From the NCBI GenBank assembly GCA_904063045.1, contig CAJFCJ010000002.1:1882422-1946421 (forward strand): DNA of 64,000 nt, given 5' to 3'. A program made the translations under genes and the position numbers. Shown here one piece after another: positions 7,071-64,000 of this stretch (position 1 is its first letter; each line of letters opens with the position of its first letter). The notes under the pieces are model-generated. The model saw only the letters and a list, made by a program, of their open reading frames with translations. It did not search any database and was not told the DNA's origin. The DNA comes from Dimorphilus gyrociliatus (Eukaryota > Animalia > Annelida).

Positions 7071-8709
<1,639 letters not shown>

Positions 8710-9320: not shown

Positions 9321-12300
9321 TTAGGAGCCAAACTCTACTGTATCGTCTTCAATTGGTTTAAATTCAAATTTCCCTCTTCCATCCATATGTAAGTAGTACT
9401 AAAATGAAATAATTATAGTATTAAAGTTATTATATAAATAGAATATAAGTCTATAATAAATACCTCGTGATGTTTCCACAAACTCTTTCTATGCGATACT
9501 GTAAATAGAGTAATTCCAACTTCTCTACAGTGATTATACATGTAACCTTCAACGTCAACGCTAACAGCGCTTGTGCATTCATCCAAAATTGCGAATTGTG
9601 GTTTATGATAAAATAATCGAGCCATCTATCGAATAGAAACAATATTTTAGAGATGAAATATTTTAAGAATCATTCAACACTTACGGCTATTCTCTGCTTT
9701 TCTCCACCACTCAATACATCCATCCAATCTTGTACGGATTCCCAACCGCCTTCACGTTCCAAAATATATGATAATTGTACTTTTTCTAATATATATTTAA
9801 GATCCGCATCGCTAATTCCTTTCTTTAATTGACCTAATTGATCATCTGGATAAATAATTTGATCTCTAAGAGTGCCCAGAGTCATGTATGGCCTCTGAGG
9901 AACATAGAAAAGATTTGCTCCAGCAGGTTTAGTTAAGTTTCCTCCAAATAGTGGCCAAAGTTCTCCCAATATTCTGAAGAGAGAACTCTTTCCGCAACCG
10001 TTCGGTCCGCAGACCAATACATTTCTTCCAGCTGGCACCTCAAAGTTTAATTCCTCAACAAGAACATCTCCATTGGGAGTTATCAATGGTACACGTTCAA
10101 ATTTAATCAAGTGATCCTTAATTAAGACTTGACCACTGTTTGGTTTCAATTCGTCTAAATGTCTAATTGGGATGGGTTTGTCTTCGTCAAAATCTCTATT
10201 CTTATCGGATTTCACCATTGTTCTTTCATATTTTCCCTTATTCAAATCGTCTAGAACTTTCATAAACTCAGTTACACGAGCGGCAAAACTGAAAATTTAA
10301 ATGAAAAGATAAAATATAGAGTGTGTAATTCTACAAAATTTATATACTCTACCCAGAAAGTCTTGTCATTTCCCTTCCAGCAAGAACAACTCTTCCAATA
10401 GCCTCTGCCATTCTTACTAACATTCTTCCACTTTGATAATAATCCTATGTGAAAGTTATAAATAAATTCCAAAGTGGTATATACTAATATGAAAATACCT
10501 CGAGTCTTTCAGAATGTGAAGATGTCAAATGTCTAGGATCAGCAAGACTTAAGAATGGACGACTTACAACCAAATATCCAACAACAGTTGCCAAATCTAT
10601 AATTTGATAAAGGAAAAGAAAAGGATTTATTAAGAAAGAATAAAGAATTTAATAAATCAATATAATATTCACATTTAGCTATGATATTATCGGTGAATCC
10701 CATATTAAAACGGAATTTTATTACACTTCTAACGTGATTGACCTATAGCATAAGAAATTATATTATAAAGGTATATTTTAAATAAAATATTAATAATTAC
10801 CAATCTTGAAAAACTAGACAATACAATTTCTTTCTCTTTTCTGTTGCCTTGATAAAATGCTACTTCTTCGCTATTTGTTATTAAACGAGAGTTAACATAT
10901 CTAAATTCTCCTTCTAATTTTTGTTCATCAACGGTCATTCTACCCATTGGTCTTCTTAATCTATAATAAATTTTCAATAGATTCTTTATTTATTGATAAA
11001 TTGTTTTAATTCCAAAAAAGTTTACCTAGTTAGTATTAGTCCTGAAACGACTAAATATAATATCATAAATCCTGGACCTTGAGCACCGATAGCTCCCGTA
11101 AGTTTTGTGGTATAGATGACAATATCAAGCATAGGCTGAAAAATTAATAATTATTCATTAACTATGAAATATAAAAAAACTATATTTTATATATTTACTT
11201 TACTCAAATTGGAATATAATTCTGCTACAGAGTCACAAAATTTATCAACATCCTGAGTTAGTAACTGATCAGGGTTAGCAATTCTATTATCCAAGTTATT
11301 CATCTTATAGTACGTAAAACCCCTTTAAAAGTCCAAAAAAAAATATTGTAATTTCATAGATAATAACTTAATCTCTATAACCTTTACACTAACACTTACG
11401 TCAAATACTTTTTATACAAATGATTTGTTAATTGGGTTCTAAAGCGAAGTTTTAATTCATTTAATCCATATTTTAACAAGTTATTAACAACTGAGATCTA
11501 AAAGAAAATGAAAAACAATATCAACTATATGAAAATTCTACGTTTAATTCTACTTACCAATGGCATGGCATAGATGAATTTAAATAAATGTACTTTAAAT
11601 AATTCATTATTTCGTCCAATAATGGCGCTATATAATGAAAGAGATTTTTAATTATTTTAACAGTAAAATAGCAATGTATACTTTGTACCTTTCTATTGCT
11701 GTACCATTCTGAATCATCCATACGTCGGCATATGTTCTAGAGGCAAGAGCAAAAGCTACCATAGCAATATACCAAACCTATATTTTGTTATTACAATTAG
11801 CTATAATCATATGTTGTTCCATAGTTTGATTTTATTCAATACCTCTTTTGAAAATAAGCCGGGAATGAGAAGTTTGAGAATTTTTCCCATACGTCTATAA
11901 AATAATCAAATTAGCTGACCAATTAAATAACTAATTTTCAATTAATAAAACCTAAAGAAGACCATATCAACGGCTGCTCTTTCTTTCTTATTTCCATTCT
12001 ATAAAAAAAAAAGTTTAAATTTTAAAAGATCATATAAAAAGTAATAAAATTAATATTAACCTCTGTGAAGATAATTGCCTTTTTGTCTTTTGATTTTCTA
12101 TAAAGAAAACATAATAATTCTATAATTCGATTTGTTAATAAACTTAAAATTTAACTCTTTAGACGAGTCACAGTTTTTGACTTTATCTATATAGTACAAT
12201 TGGTTGAACTACAGCTCGTAGTAATGTAGATGTATCATCATTAAATTAAAACAATGATTTCGAACCTTTTCTTCTTTTCATTTATTTTGTCAAGAAAAGA

Positions 12301-55916: not shown

Positions 55917-58900
55917 CTACTTTTTAACACTTTTATCAAATTGACGCTTCCTTTCTCTTGTTAGGTGATTGGCGATCTAGAAATTATTTAAGCAGTATAT
56001 CAATTATGTATATTTTATAGTAAAGTAGTTACAATCTTTATGAATACCTGCATTGAAGTACGCTTAGCCCTGTTTTCAGCTTCTCTTACACGATCTTCCA
56101 TATTTTTAATATTACGACTATATTCGGATATTAAACTTTCAGTCTGTAAAAGCAAATTAGAAATATTCTAATATATGTCGTATTAATTCTTAAAACTGAC
56201 CTCCATTGCCTTATCTTTACTGTCTTTGAGAAGGCGTTTTAACTCTTCATTCCTAATTTTTTCTCTAGACATGTCCTCCCTTAGATCCTTGACCTTTAAT
56301 TCATATTTTCTAGATATAGTTTCACACTCTTCTTTCCACCTAAATGGATTATTTACGACAATTAATACAAATTTTAATAGTGTAAAGTAATGTAAGAAAA
56401 GAGATTATAAAAAAGTAAGATTAATATATATTAATCTTGTGACTTCAATGTGAAAGTTTGTAAGAGAATATTAAAATTTTCGTTTACATTTCATCAAATA
56501 TTTTTGTTGGAAACTGTCAAAGTTTTTTATTCAATGAAATTGAGATAGACTTATTAAATTTGTACGCAAACCTGGCACTCATCTTTTGTTGAGCAGTAAG
56601 CATATTTCTTAAATCTTTCATAGCATTCCGATGTTCGTCTTCGGATGTATGAATTCTTATTTCAAATTCTTCAATTTTTAGTTTTAAGTCTTTTTCAGCA
56701 CATGTAAGCTTTGAATATTGAATAAAGAATTTAAAAAAGATTAAATTAGAGATTTAGAGCAATGCTTTAACTGATTGAATTGATTCTCACTTCTTTTTGT
56801 AATTTCCTACATGCTGAGTCTCTCTCCGAACTTAACGATGAACACCTTCTCTTCAAATCATCTACTTGTTCCAAGAGTTTTACTCTATCGTCATTAACTA
56901 AGTCAAAATCAATCTTTAATTTATTAAAGTGACCATTTAATTGTTCGAGTTCACGTTGAACTTGTTCTTTTTCTTGTTTAAATTGAACTTCGTTGCGTTT
57001 CAACTGATTTTTAAAAGACTCTGCTTTTATTGTTGCTTCGTCCCTTAGGCGTTCGGCTTCGCAAGCCCTTCTATTTAATTCTTGTAAAGCTCCTGTGTCC
57101 TTAGAGCCTTGAATACGACCTTCTTGATATAACTTATCTAACTCAGCTTCAACGGCCCTCTTTTCTCTAATAGACCTCTCTAATTGAGCCGTTTTCTCTG
57201 CATTTTCAATCTCTAGAGCTTTCAAATCCTCATTCATTCTATTCAACTTTTGAATATATTCATTCTTTATCAGATCAACTTCCTTAACAGTTCTAGCACC
57301 TGCTTCATCTACAAGTTTATCAAAAGCATATTTTAATCTTTCAATTTCTTCTAAGAGCTGTTTTTCACGCATAAGGGATTGATCTCTCTCCAATATGGCA
57401 TTTTCTACAAGAGAAACTCCTTCCTTCATGTGAGTAGATGTTTCTAAGTCCTTATTAAGTCTCTCCGAGCTAGAAAGTGAGTAATGTAAAGTATAAAAGT
57501 CCTCCATTCTGCGCTAATTGTGTACATACCTTAATTTTTCGAATCTTAAAATTCTATCTTCTAGGAAACCTTTTTCAGACCTCAATTGCTCATTGGCTTC
57601 CAAAGACTTTTGAAGGCTAATCAAAAGAAAAGCGAACGTTATGACTATCAATGTTTTATTAATTTATCTTTGAAAATTTCAAACAAATTATACTAAAGTG
57701 GGAAGTGCTTACCTTTCTTCAAGGGCTGATATCTGCTTCTTAAGCTCATGGGAAATACTATCCGAAGGCTCAGTCTGAAATTTACGAGAAATAACTACTC
57801 CTTTCGTATTAGGAATGTATATGAACATGTCACCACGTGGAAGACAATGGCGAATAGCGCATAATTTTACGTCCCCAGTTCAATGTTTTAATTATTTAGC
57901 ATATTCGCTATTGTCTCTATAACAAACAAGCGCGTACATGTTTTACAGTTCAGTTATAATTAAGTTAATTTAGATAGGAGTTGAAAGAAAACGAGTACAA
58001 ACTTTAAAATATTGGGAGATCATGCTAAACTACCCGGCAAAAACGCGGGGCTAGAAAAGATATGAATCGATTACCTTTTTCCCGATTTATATATCAATCG
58101 ACTTATCGATTCAACATGCTTTTAACAAACTAGGCTATATATTTATTCAATATTAATTTAATCTCTTAAGTAGACTACTTATTCCAGAATAATTATTTAT
58201 ATTCCTTTAAGAAATATAGTAGTAATATAATAATTATTTGTTAGTGCAATGTTTTTCTTCTTTTCTTTTAAACTGTCTATTGAAATCTTATACATCACGT
58301 GACATCTTCTTGTTTGACACCCCTAATAGTCGATACAAACGCAATTTGCTCATATAATGGAGTTCAAAAGTATAAATCTATAATAATAAAAGTTATACGC
58401 AAGATGGCGTAATACTAGCTGAATTCTTTCTCTTAGAGTTCGTTTAAGATTTCTCACATGCGATATTTTTTAACAATTTAACGAAAATGAGGAATAAAGT
58501 GAATTTATACTTACATTATGAGGCATTGAAAATTTTTGCACGCTATGGCATCTGTTTTCGAAGCCAGAACTTCTGAAAAAATGATTCTCGGATTTAGACT
58601 TTTCCAATTCAATCTGCAATCTATTGATTTCAGCGTGTAATTCGGCAACAGTCTCTGTATATTGGTCTTTTAACTGTCTGGCTTGCTGATCAAGAGCTCT
58701 TATCTTAGGATGATATTGATGGGCCTTAAAATAAAGATATAAATATTATTTGTATTATTAGGGCTATAACTTGATAAGACAAACTTACTTTTAGTTTAAC
58801 TTCTAATCTATCCACTTCTAATTTTTCTAATTGCCACATTTCAATTGCACTTTCTTTCTCCTGAAAATTTATTGTTAGTTAGTTAACATCCGTGTTTGTA

Positions 58901-60008
58901 ATTTGATTCGAAATTGTTAACCTTTTGGAGAAGTTGGAGTTGAGTTTGTAGATTAAGTAATATTTGATCTTCTGAAAGCGTATCTTTTTCATGAACAGGA
59001 TGAATATCTAATTGATTTTGCATTGATTCTCTAAGTTCACGATGAAGCCTCTGATTTTCTGCGATTAGACGATGAACTTCCGTCTGTAAGTCGTCTACCC
59101 TAGACTGAACGTAAAAATTGAATGCTTCATTTAAGAGTATTGTTAAAATTCAATAATTGTTTAAGCGAACAATGCCCAATCATTAAAACTATCAAGGGAT
59201 TTTTTGTTTCATCAAAAAACTTACATCCATAGTTATACTGTTAACGATTGATGAATCTCGAATAATACTTTATTTATAAAGTACTCTACCTGCAAGGTGG
59301 AAGTTTCCTGTTTTGCCATCGCCATTTGGGTGTCATATTCAAAAAGAAGAGGAGCGAGGTGACTGTTTATAAATATATATAATTTTATAGTCACATATCG
59401 AAACTTTAAAGATCATAAATATGTTATGGGCTTCAAAAGTAAGTCGATTAATCTTATTAAGATTTGTAAAAGTTTAATCATTATTTTTAAAATTGTAATT
59501 TAATCATTTCTAATATTAATAATGAAAGTTACTATAAATCCTAATTGTTCATAAATAAAAGTTCAGTGGATTTGACTAGTGGATTAAAAACGTTCCAACT
59601 TCTATCATTGATTATATTTGTAGTACTAATTTTTAAATAATAGATGAAAACTGGTATTTTGTTGCCATTGACAACTGGCTTGTCATAATCGTTTGTTTCT
59701 TTGTTTAAGAGATGTAAATTAAAATATTACGCTTTATCCGTTAGCCATGGTGGAGTAGGTCCTTCAGGTAACGAATTCTATGTAAAGAAAGTAGGCGATG
59801 TTATAAAAAATTATATTCTTAATATTCCAAACTCAACTTACGTCATTCCCAAATCCAATCGGAGGATACTTTTCTTGATACTTTGATAATTCATGATTTA
59901 ATCTCTTAACTATTTAGAAGAATGGAAACTATAGAACCATACAAGTTGTAGCACGTCTAAAAACAACTTACTCTGATCATTTAAAAAAGCTACATCAGGT
60001 GATGACAT
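55917..60008 (-). CDS. SCLT1: Sodium channel and clathrin linker 1 (centriolar distal appendage coiled-coil protein)
   Basis: MSSPDVAFLNDQ|IKRLNHELSKYQ, HLAPLLFEYD, LIAENQRLHREL, KTAQLERSIREKRAVEAELDKLYQEG and VREAENRA parallel SCLT1; splice phases check. Confidence 0.85.
59661..59675. promoter_or_regulatory. RFX X-box in SCLT1 intron 3
   Basis: GTTGCCATTGACAAC is close to the canonical GTTGCCATGGCAAC and sits in a ciliary gene. Confidence 0.55.
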
Positions 60009-60294
60009 TCTGAATGGTTCAAAGATACTTTCAATTTAAATTCTATATTAATAATTTTGCTTTGATTAGTTATCTACTAATCGATCAAAATAATTATTCG
60101 GTTTTTTGTTTCAAATTTAATATAAAGATCGCCATATTGTAAACATATTGCAACGTCAGGTCCGCGCCAAAATATTCGTTCTTACTAAAAGATGGGTCGA
60201 AGATTTTTAATCAAATATCTATTTTCTATTTTATGTAAAACTGCCTTGGAAAACATAAATAACAAAAAAAATATATGAAATTTCTTAATTTCAG

Positions 60295-63215
60295 AACAAG
60301 ATCAACGACTTAAAAATATGGACAGATAGTATAACAAAGAAAAGATCCGATTTGAATATAGAATCAAATTTTGAGAACGAACAAAAGTTCTTTTACGTCA
60401 TTCAAACTGAATTTCAAAAGCATTTATTAAAAAAATACAATTTTATAATTGAAATAAATGCAATTCACAATATTTCAAGGTTTCACCCTATAATACTAAC
60501 GATAATATGTAATAATTAAAAAATAAACTATCCTTTACTTGTCTCCTAGATTAAAATTCTCACTTTTTGAAATATGCGTATTCACAAATTCTGGTCTAAA
60601 ATCTGGTGCAATATTTTTTACTCATTCAAAAGATTTAGTAGGAATTCAAAGAGGTTACGAAGTAATTATTGAATGGAATGAACAATGGGCTAGAAATGCT
60701 CGTTTAGTAATTATTAATGAGAATAATCAGAATCATTTATTAGCTTTAAGACAAGTTTTTCCAGGTATGTAGTTAATAATCTATATTGTACATTTATAAT
60801 ATTTAATAACCATTATTTGTAAATAGATGCCTTCATTCGAATATCTGAAAATTATACTAATCAAATATGGCAAAAGATGTCAAAGGATAAAAATGTTCAA
60901 AACATATTAAAATCAATTGCAAGATCAGGTTTATAAGTCAATATTCGATGAAATTGAGACTTTTTATTACTTTTTACAGAAAATAAGTGTATTTTGGAAA
61001 ATAATATAAAAAAATTACACTCGCATGATATATGGAAAGATGAGAATTTTCAGAATAATTACAATGATGTCTGGTCAAAAGAAATCGAGGTAGATAAGTA
61101 ATTAACTATATATTTAATATTTTTATATAAGTATTAACCTACAAATAATTAACAGATATGGTGTAAAGCGTACTTACCGAAGGATTGTTCATTACTGTTA
61201 AAAATAACAAACTGCTTACAGAAAAGGGAATTTTTTTCTATAAAACTAACAGCTTCTGCAAATATTTGTATTAGAAGAATTATATTGAATTATCTTCCTA
61301 AAAGTGAAAGAGAGTTAATAACTTTTTAATTTTAACATATACAGTGTATATACATATATATATACTGTATATATACACATGTTTATACAGTTACATAATA
61401 TTACATTCATGTTTTTGTTTCTTTCTTTCGCCAGTTACGTAATGGAAAATTTAAGAATGTCTTTTAGAAATGATAACTATGGTTTTAATTTGCCATTTTA
61501 TCTTAAAAATCGACCAAGATGGTTAATTAAACTTATTATGGAGAAACGAGAGTTTTGTGGTACTATTATTAATAGGATAGACACTACTACAAGGTTTGAA
61601 TTTCTTCACAGAAATATGGTGGAAAGTCAAGTAATTGTATACGTTTTTATTATTATTAGCTAATGATTTATCCGTATCTTTTTCCTATTCAAAGATTTCG
61701 TTTGAAGATGGAGAGATATACTGTTCGTGCGATGATTTTAAAACAAAAACATTCTTTTGTAGACATATTACTTGTGTATTGAGACATAAGTTAACTAATT
61801 GGTCTGATTTAGGAGAATGTATATTGAAGAATCCTATTTTTTATGTTGATATTAATTTAGCCAGCCTAATGTATTGTCCAAAGGTAATGAAACATGTAAT
61901 GAATCAATCAAGAGCTCATTATAGCATTCATACTACATATACAATATAGTATATATAACTATTTAGAGATCTCTTCTATTCTTACAAATAGGTACTCCAG
62001 AGAAAAATGACATCATTAAAGTCCTTGCTGCATAAGAAAAGTATTTTTAATAAGTGTATGAATTCTAGCGACAAAGATTTGTCTAAGCACAATATCACCA
62101 ACTCTTTTTATCGCTGGTTGAATGTTTTCCTTCAGTTAGTTAATAAAATTCTATGTTATACATTTTGTTACAAAAATGTATAAAATATATAATTTTCCAG
62201 TAAATCTGGAGACTATTTTGAAAATACTGAAAGTCTTCTACAAAGTGTTGAAAGTCAAACGGATGGCTTTGAGCAGGATTTTGAGGACGCCCCATTTGAT
62301 CCAATATTTGCAAGTAAAATCAGGATTTAGATTTAATTTTTCAGTAAGGAAGTAATATTCGTGTATCTATCATTAGATCGAAAAACATCTGATTGTAAAG
62401 ATTTGAAGAATAGTGGAGAAGTTACTATTGATGATACTGCATGGGTTACGAATGACCAGTACAAATTATTCAGTTATCATAAGGAAATTCTCATAAAGCG
62501 AAGCGAATTGACAGCAGACGTTATTAATTATGGAATGGGATTGATAAAAAAGCAATTTCCAAATGCAGCTGGGTTATTTAATATTGAGCACGTGTATAAA
62601 TTAGATTTTCCACGTTGTTCTGATAGATTTATTCAGATTCTTCATTGTGGATCACGGAACCATTGGATTGTAGCTTCAAATTATCATAAATTCGGCAAAA
62701 ATCTTATTCATATTTATGATAGTCAACATGATCAAATAAATGAAGATCTAAAGACGCAAATTTGCAATATTTTACATTCAAATTTAAAAACTGTATATTT
62801 TCAATGCTGTTCTGTCCAACAACAGGTAAACTCTACAACTTGCGGTTTATTCTCTTTAGCTTTTACTGTGGATTTGCTAAGAGGAGAGGATGTTATTGAA
62901 ATTGAATATGATGAAAGCGATATGTTTAATCACTTGATTCATTGCCTTAATTTGGGGAAAATTTGCGAATTTCCTAGAAAAACGGGAAAATCGTCTCGAC
63001 CAAAACCGATTCTTTCTGAAGTAAATGTTATTTGCAAGTGTCGGATGCCAAGTAATCGTTACCTAACTTTTAGAGAATCAAATGACGAAGAAAAAGGACT
63101 TGTTGCATGCTTAAAATGTAAAGAACATTTTCATATGGAGTGCGTGGATATCTCAAATGAGAATTTTAAATGTTACTTTTGTGCATTCGATAGATTTAAG
63201 ATTATTAAAGCATAG
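60295..63215 (+). CDS. Mutator(MULE)-transposase-derived protein with SWIM finger, Ulp1/C48-like protease and PHD-like finger; 5' end unresolved
   Basis: About 9 phase-compatible introns. FYVIQTEFQKHLLKKY, LPFYLKNRP and WSDL...NPIFYVD resemble MULE transposases. SWIM CSCDDFKTKTFFCRH; protease NHWIV/IYDS/QQQVNSTTCGLF; PHD-like CKC...CLKCKEHFHMEC...CYFC. Confidence 0.75.
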
Positions 63216-63387: not shown

Positions 63388-63587
63388 TCCTGTCTTATGG
63401 GGCTGCTATATTTTACATCTTAAAGCTTTATCTTTTTTTATTGTTTTTCTGGGTACTAAACGCTGCTTAAAGCAGCAAGGTTGGTAATAATAAATGTTTT
63501 AAGAATCGATTCACTCAAGATTTCGATTGTAAACATTATACTTACGTAAAACAGAAAAGCAAACATAGAGGGCGATAATAGGACGTA

Positions 63588-64000
63588 ATGAGCACTAAAC
63601 GCCAAATCTCAGCCGAAGAAGGAAAAGCCAGACAAAGCGTTTTTGCCCGTTTAGGTCCGGGAGCCCCAAATCGAGTAAAAGAAATTGAGGTATAGACGTA
63701 ATATGTTAAAATTTGGTAATATCGCAGATTTTTTTTTAGCAAACAAGGTGGGAAAAAGCAATACGAAAAGACGAGAAGAAAGTTAAACTATCGTCCCCCA
63801 GTGCATCTTCCTCATCTCCTAGTCCAAAGGTATGTTCCGTTATTCTGTGATTGCTAATACCATATTATTTAGTAGTTTGAAGCAATTCAATTCTTGCTTT
63901 GCTTGAAAAAGATTGATTATAAATCATATTTCCTTAATGCAACTGTTGACATAAAAGAGTGGAGATTTTAATATAGCACGAGGATTTAATTTTTTCTAAA
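63588..64000 (+). CDS. 5' part of a gene, possibly ZC3H13/Flacc-like; runs off the window
   Basis: Exon 1 MSTKRQISAEEGKARQSVFARLGPGAPNRVKEIE resembles the ZC3H13 N-terminus (RPSVFERLGP). Exon 2 (~63740-63829) is Ser-rich. The SVFxRLG motif also occurs in other RNA-processing proteins. Confidence 0.45.

Follow-up and report, generated by a model that had tools for sequence, protein, structure and literature searches.

Gene structure and domain order

The window analysed in this work is a 64,000-nucleotide stretch of the genome of the annelid Dimorphilus gyrociliatus (contig CAJFCJ010000002.1, positions 1,882,422 to 1,946,421), and the subject is a gene on its plus strand at 60295-63215, a putative host gene of transposon origin. 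All coordinates, including those of the exons, refer to this 64-kb window. The gene model, rebuilt from GT/AG splice sites and open frames, comprises 10 exons separated by 9 introns of 55-121 nt, with a total of 749 codons and a TAG stop at 63213-63215 (Table 1). The predicted protein carries, in this order, an RNase H-like core of the type found in Mutator-like elements (MULE) and ZSWIM1-3, a SWIM zinc finger, a protease of the Ulp/SENP fold and a PHD-type finger. A spliced open reading frame (ORF) with about nine introns and this domain order had been proposed in an original prediction made from the sequence alone. Both were confirmed by the rebuilt model, the relatives, the profiles, the fold and the introns common to a relative. 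The window has about 30% G+C, and its introns are very short; in D. gyrociliatus the median intron is 66 bp, the DNA transposons are Mariner and MULE only, and trans-splicing has been reported absent (PMC7854359).

Table 1. Features of the gene and of its upstream region in the window.
Feature	Position	Strand	Content
Non-coding block	60128-60189		Probable bidirectional promoter; contains CGCCATATTG; matches L013 ~7840-7905
Candidate first coding exon	60193-60234	+	ATG, 14 codons, phase 0, donor GTAAAA; uncertain
Exon 1	60295-60479	+	RNase H-like core begins
Exon 2	60550-60764	+	Core strands; 'VFP' motif at end
Exon 3	60827-60928	+	Former CxxH site
Exon 4	60980-61089	+	Helical insertion of the core, 'VW.K...' motif
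Exon 5	61156-61313	+	Region of the third catalytic residue
Exon 6	61435-61630	+	Conserved 'LP.YL.NRP' stretch before SWIM
Exon 7	61695-61883	+	SWIM zinc finger
Exon 8	61992-62134	+	Linker, poorly conserved
Exon 9	62201-62313	+	Linker, poorly conserved except acidic motif
Exon 10	62377-63215	+	Ulp/SENP-fold protease ~62436-62978, PHD-type finger 63033-63182, stop

An ortholog locus (L013) was found in a related species, on the contig of the protein P0001. It contains all exons in the same order, with all frames open and spliceable, and both flanking genes are syntenic. The in-frame introns of L013 have the same phases as those of the window, including through the linker of exons 8-9. The candidate first coding exon is the sole in-frame ATG exon upstream of exon 1. 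There would be no room for the N-terminal DNA-binding region of the relatives, because exon 1 lies only about 285 bp from the start codon of the neighbouring gene.

Homology of the transposase core

Searches were run on single exons. Full-length relatives showed the domain order expected from the gene model. P0075 comprises ZSWIM1-3_RNaseH-like/MULE, SWIM, C48 and PHD, and P0162 comprises the core and C48. At the marine-metagenome locus L021, an ORF with ALS2CR8, ZSWIM1-3_RNaseH-like and MULE lies just 5′ of a SWIM-protease-PHD ORF, P0025. Another word search yielded 14 proteins, or 13 when P0010, the representative of the cluster of P0162, is set aside, and 13 carry the ZSWIM1-3 core type. 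All 15 aligned family members, where complete, retain the motifs DaTY, mtDKD, iC.FH and TNNrVES.N..K.

In hhalign alignments to this distant family, the first Asp motif was matched by exon 1 (P=0.02), the second Asp motif by exon 2 (P=0.007) and the SWIM finger by exon 7 (P=0.0004), and these placements were colinear. Exons 1-6 also aligned in order with the exons of L021, with shuffle P values of 0.012, <=0.0005, 0.02, 0.006, 0.03 and <=0.0005, respectively; for exon 2, P was <=0.0005 in both species. Exon 3 gave a gapless 16-residue match to L021 running from 'P' to 'W', in which ICDFH of L021 stands against ISENY of the window. Exon 4 aligned to exon B of L021 and exon 5 to exon C (P=0.03 for the window); the best local alignment of the ortholog exon 5 (P=0.01) covers another stretch. 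By tblastn, exon 6 matched L020 (E=1e-5) and L021 (E=2e-4). Furthermore, the introns between exons 2 and 3 (after 'FP' plus 1 nt), exons 4 and 5 (phase 0) and exons 5 and 6 (phase 2) are identical in codon position and phase to those of L021. On these comparisons the core is homologous to the MULE/ZSWIM1-3 RNase H-like transposases (PF10551, PF21056), because exons 1-6 are colinear with L021, the hhalign placements agree with this order and three intron positions are common.

Catalytic residues of the core

In place of the first catalytic Asp, codon 60457-60459 encodes Asn (IEINAIH), which hhalign aligned on the D of 'DaTY'; the ortholog has Asn too (IIQVNMIQ). The second Asp is replaced by Asn at 60716-60718 (VIINE), whereas the ortholog retains Asp; its placement is ambiguous by one residue, since a gapless alignment from 'FP' puts Glu 60719 there. 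In exon 5 the family motif 'TNNrVES.N..K' reads TNCLQKREFFSIK with identical T-to-K spacing, and the third catalytic residue, Glu in the family, is Lys in both species (61222-61224 in the window). The catalytic set is thus N/N/K in the window and N/D/K in the sister species. The CxxH motif has become S..Y in the window (Ser 60844-60846, Tyr 60853-60855) and S..F in the ortholog.

The two Asn-for-Asp replacements and the absence of CxxH had been read by eye in the original prediction. Both replacements hold under profile and pairwise alignment, and the codon coordinates given there were exact (AAT 60457, AAT 60716, His 62661, Asp 62718 and Cys 62841, the last three being protease residues). We judge from the residues that the DDE core is dead and would be unable to cut DNA, because its catalytic acids and CxxH have been lost.

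SWIM finger and linker

Exon 7 contains the four SWIM ligands in a CxC...CxH arrangement (Cys 61722, Cys 61728, Cys 61758 and His 61764). The motif reads CSC...CRH in the window and CTC...CKH in the ortholog, so that the ligands are kept in both. The score against Pfam SWIM (PF04434) was 17.3 bits, below the cut-off of 19.6, and exon 7 matched the family hidden Markov model (HMM) with a shuffle P<=0.003, as well as the SWIM fingers of many relatives.

The linker is less well conserved. Exon 8 is 33% identical to its ortholog, and exon 9 matches only at an acidic (E/D)QDF(E/D)..FD motif (window 62260-62313; L013 ~9944-9983), which could be a short linear interaction motif. The poor conservation of exons 8-9 (<=33%) would suit a model in which two genes have been fused by mistake, namely a transposase relic (exons 1-7) and a protease-PHD gene (exon 10 and possibly exon 9), as would the uncertain start codon and the many database relatives that consist of protease and PHD alone. 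However, P0075 and P0162 show the same domain order in a single ORF, in-frame introns of conserved phase join exons 7-10 in both species, and exon 10 is preceded by an intron of only 63 nt with no independent ATG-initiated frame. We consider two separate genes very unlikely.

The protease and PHD-type module

A word search returned one relative, P0001, with 64% identity. When the pair of the window and P0001 was used in an exhaustive search, 4537 proteins were found at E<=1e-3, of which 1484 reached E<=1e-10; the majority of the matches cover both the protease-like and the finger parts. Several of these relatives exceed the Pfam cut-offs for C48 and PHD; P0068, P0155 and P0157 scored 32.9, 31.3 and 31.5 bits for C48 against a cut-off of 20.7. 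Exon 10 itself scored 21.3 bits against Pfam PHD, under the 24-bit cut-off.

We then aligned 63 sequences (the window, the ortholog and 61 relatives; alignment A3). The four protease residues, His 62661, Asp 62718, Gln 62823 and Cys 62841 (H95, D114, Q149 and C155 of exon 10), occupy columns with a conservation of at least 98% (60 of the 61 relatives), and all four are kept in the ortholog. Together with the eight zinc ligands of the finger, they are conserved in 54-61 of the 61 relatives, with seven of the eight ligands at >=90%. The Trp after the His (W96) and the Gly after the Cys are present in both species. In the finger, the C4HC3 ligands C219, C221, C244, C247, H252, C255, C265 and C268 are likewise present in both. 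This agrees with the original prediction, which had listed the His, Asp, Gln and Cys as present and the finger as PHD-like.

A profile of A3 matched an Ulp1-like protease, SENP1/2/8 and yeast Ulp1 in the PDB at E values of 3e-8 to 1e-6, with SENP1 and Ulp1 between 3e-8 and 1e-7. It also matched the H3K4me3-reading PHD fingers of PHF2, PHF8, DIDO1, BPTF, Spp1 and TAF3, the best being PHF2 at 3.5e-13. An AlphaFold2 model of exon 10 built from A3 had a pLDDT of 89.7 and a pTM of 0.86. Its top 27 Foldseek matches were SENP1, 2, 3, 5 and 7, Ulp1, NEDP1 and the deSUMOylating protease 5lnb, with a probability of 1.00 throughout. The ESM Atlas has the module in PHD+C48 clusters, in which the members of known phylum belong most often to Chordata and Cnidaria. 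According to the model, exon 10 has an Ulp/SENP fold (CE clan, C48-like).

The substrate of the protease is less clearly indicated. In Ulp1 and SENP1, a pair of tunnel Trp residues is known to clamp the Gly-Gly tail of the substrate. One of the pair, the Trp next to the catalytic His, is kept here (W96). The N-terminal clamp motif of the family, WL.D..IN, has become EL.A..IN in both species, with Glu43 in place of Trp and Ala46 in place of Asp; of the 61 relatives, 32 have the W and 40 the D. The protease is also matched by CE-clan enzymes specific for NEDD8 or ubiquitin. The name deSUMOylase given in the original prediction is therefore overstated, although the fold is that of Ulp/SENP.

The degraded clamp, together with the loss of the PHD cage described below, might also be read as a remodelling of the ancestral binding functions, in which the domesticated protein is no longer an enzyme and serves as a non-catalytic scaffold or an adaptor for binding a ubiquitin-like modifier (Ubl). 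Catalytically dead relatives of the CE clan, however, usually lose the Cys or the His, and here all four catalytic positions, the Trp after the His and the Gly after the Cys are kept in both species. A scaffold thus seems unlikely to us, and an active protease is preferred.

At the family level, the profile places the finger in the H3K4me3-reader subtype of PHD fingers. Of the 61 relatives, 45 have Y/F at the first aromatic-cage position and 47 have W at the second, whereas the window has I218 and H250 and the ortholog H and T. Both cage residues are thus lost and chromatin targeting is unsupported, so the description of the protein as chromatin-targeted in the original prediction could not be upheld.

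Copy number, synteny and selection

The genome searched comprises 77.9 Mb in 349 contigs. Exon 2, exon 10 and the A3 profile matched this locus alone, the other matches of the profile being ordinary PHD fingers or a canonical SENP. No ZSWIM1-3-type core was found above threshold in the whole genome, and Pfam C48 matched elsewhere only at three canonical loci. No terminal inverted repeats (TIRs) were found around the gene, where the only inverted pairs were AT-rich and imperfect, in agreement with the original prediction.

The genome also carries at least 171 matches to Pfam MULE, none of them at this gene. Among these are repeated MULE frames of 412 and 470 amino acids with identical scores, such as L004 (C192:61255-64533) and L005 (C203:12686-15964). 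This points to a recently active family of a lineage other than that of the gene studied, because repeated open frames score identically. BLASTP of the exons against the ORFs of the genome's own intact MULE elements (L001-L010) showed no similarity, and these elements belong to a different Mutator lineage.

Substitutions between the window and L013 were estimated from Nei-Gojobori counts summed per exon. The proportion of nonsynonymous differences (pN) was 0.27 overall and that of synonymous differences (pS) 0.67, giving an omega of about 0.2 with saturated dS, and pN was well below pS in each exon. The dead core had an omega of 0.34. No exon is better conserved than exon 5, with 77% identity and an omega of 0.14; in exon 10, pN was 0.22 and pS 0.76. 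An exon of the neighbouring gene had a dN of 0.06 and a dS of about 1.7, so the two species must have diverged long ago. On these values the gene is under purifying selection, because a neutral relic would not stay open at such divergence.

It could still be argued that the locus is a dead and decaying Mutator copy without host function, whose frames are open by chance. Such a fossil would be consistent with the lost catalytic residues and TIRs, with faster evolution than that of the neighbours and with the absence of the family from the rest of the genome. But about 2.25 kb of coding sequence in 10 exons has stayed open in both species at the dS of the neighbour, with conserved splice phases, pN well below pS in all exons and the invariant H, D, Q, C and zinc-ligand columns retained. 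Chance preservation is, in our judgement, highly improbable. Domestication as a host gene is well supported by the sequence comparison, because the gene is a single copy without TIRs, has a syntenic ortholog and shows pN well below pS. This is in line with the original prediction of a host-recruited, transposon-derived gene, for which the copy number (single, by sequence and by profile) and a syntenic ortholog with dN/dS<1 (L013, with both neighbours and an omega of about 0.2) had been named as checks.

Comparison with known systems

The combination of domains is not new. Bao, Kapitonov and Jurka (2010, PMC2836005) listed Ulp1 domains in Mutator transposons of hydra and lancelet, and aligned Ginger1 and Mutator transposases over their Ulp1 and PHD domains. 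Transposases of this type (here P0075, P0162 and L021) have the same domain order as the gene, including the long linker. Their C-terminal module is about 30-34% identical to that of the gene, and L021 shares the three introns mentioned above. However, they retain D, D, E and CxFH where the gene has N/N/K and S..Y, and L021 has an N-terminal ALS2CR8-type region where the gene has no room for a DNA-binding domain. Unlike them, the gene is single-copy, without TIRs and with a syntenic ortholog. No TIRs were found around the relatives of the same architecture L020, L021 and L027 within their short contigs.

One locus, L026, contains an element of about 9 kb (L026:1764-10814) with TIRs of 336 nt that are 99% complementary. 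It encodes P0178, which consists of the MULE/ZSWIM1-3 core, SWIM and a C-terminal PHD, with a ZSWIM3_N-type ORF upstream inside the element. No protease module is detectable in it, so we do not count it as an element of the same architecture and regard it as a cousin only.

Host genes derived from MULEs have been described in both plants and animals (PMC6446971, PMC10027918), and the survey of animal FHY3-like genes mentions no Ulp/SENP module (PMC10027918). FHY3/FAR1 and MUSTANG of plants, ZSWIM1/ZSWIM3 of vertebrates and the animal FHY3-like genes resemble the gene in having an immobile, single-copy Mutator core with SWIM under purifying selection. FHY3/FAR1 keep their N-terminal DNA-binding domain and use it as transcription factors. 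In the gene, by contrast, the DNA-binding end is missing and the conserved candidate for an enzymatic part is the accessory protease. The ULP-like genes of plants, which KI-MULEs have spread according to work cited in PMC2836005 (Hoen et al. 2006; van Leeuwen et al. 2007), likewise tie a C48/Ulp1-type protease to Mutator elements; KI-MULEs are multi-copy, whereas the gene is a syntenic, single-copy and DDE-dead fusion in an animal. With SENP/Ulp1 and SENP8/NEDP1 (MEROPS C48) it shares the fold (TM up to 0.67 on the target), the His-Asp-Cys triad, the oxyanion Gln and the His-Trp pair, and it differs from them in its low identity (about 15%), in lacking a direct Pfam C48 match, in having Glu for the first clamp Trp and in forming one protein with a dead transposase and a PHD-type finger.

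Our literature search found no report of a DDE-dead, protease-intact Mutator derivative. In the original prediction the gene was regarded as possibly undescribed in animals. This was too broad, given the published hydra and lancelet Ulp1(+PHD) Mutator transposases (PMC2836005) and the thousands of relatives of the module; the Ulp1+PHD Mutator combination is already known in animals, and only its domesticated, DDE-dead derivative appears to be unreported.

Proposed history and function

Taken together, we consider it probable that this host gene arose from a Mutator transposase that carried a protease and a PHD finger, that its core is dead and that its protease is probably a Ubl isopeptidase. 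The ancestor would have been a transposase of the Mutator superfamily (ZSWIM1-3/MULE type) already bearing the C-terminal Ulp/SENP-like protease and PHD finger, an architecture that persists with an intact core in relatives elsewhere. One copy would have become fixed beside the coiled-coil gene in the dinophilid annelid lineage. Its terminal repeats would then have been lost, apparently along with the N-terminal DNA-binding domain, as well as the catalytic acids and CxxH of the core. The sequence comparison shows that selection has kept the entire reading frame, including the dead core, the SWIM ligands, the four protease residues (His, Asp, Gln and Cys) and all eight ligands of zinc in the finger.

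Most likely the protein acts as a cysteine isopeptidase on a ubiquitin-like modifier, for which SUMO is the leading candidate. Its dead core, SWIM and finger would be binding or targeting modules, rather than a transposase or a methyl-lysine reader. More tentatively, the accessory Ubl protease, and not the part that binds or cuts DNA, might have been the cargo that was selected, with the dead core, which is best conserved in the exon around its former catalytic Glu, re-used for the recognition of a substrate or nucleic acid; we regard this as possible, though doubtful.

Several observations weigh against the proposed history and function as a whole. Pfam MULE gave no match on any single exon, and the alignments of several exons are weak when taken singly; the scores of exons 3-6 against a family HMM built from distant full-length relatives were non-significant, and only the closer L021 resolved these exons. 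Pfam PF02902 (Peptidase_C48) gave no match to exon 10 even at E<=10. The check by Pfam HMMs suggested in the original prediction thus gave no direct confirmation of the D-to-N changes, as neither MULE nor C48 matched the exons. The candidate ATG exon lacks conservation in L013, where reading of the sequence gave no alternative ATG...GT exon. Orthologs come from two species only, and the gene, with a dN of 0.34 against 0.06 for its neighbour, evolves about five times as fast. Finally, the activity or the substrate of the protease may have changed, because the first clamp Trp and the neighbouring Asp are lost.

If the tentative reading of the accessory protease as the selected cargo is correct, D. 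gyrociliatus and its relative would have a Ubl isopeptidase that is restricted to their lineage and targeted in a way that differs from all SENPs. Many DNA transposons, Mutator and Ginger1 among them, carry proteases of the Ulp1 or OTU type. A dead transposase kept by the host together with a conserved protease would be a natural separation of the two activities; it suggests that the protease module can be useful alone, because the host kept it with a dead transposase, and makes the gene product a tractable protein for asking what transposon proteases cleave. The gene is also a well-documented case of domestication in an animal whose genome is very compact and poor in transposons. The case is limited in reach, as a lineage-restricted example of a known process, drawn from two related species by sequence and model evidence.

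Flanking genes and the intergenic region

The upstream neighbour, at 56770-60008 on the minus strand, encodes a coiled-coil protein with sub-threshold matches to CCCAP and TPR_MLP1_2 (a putative SCLT1 in the original prediction), and the head-to-head arrangement noted in the original prediction was confirmed. Between the two genes, the 62-bp non-coding block of Table 1 is almost invariant between the window and L013, while the intergenic DNA on either side has about 73% identity or cannot be aligned. The two species are nearly identical in this block despite saturated synonymous sites. It is probably a shared core-promoter or 5′ untranslated region element. The CGCCATATTG within it is similar to a YY1-type core.

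The first exon of the downstream gene (63555-63695; L013 11235-11375) encodes protein sequence that is 97% identical between the two species. Its pS is only 0.16, compared with about 0.67 in the other genes of the region. This low pS suggests that the exon is under constraint at the nucleotide level, from RNA structure or a regulatory overlap.

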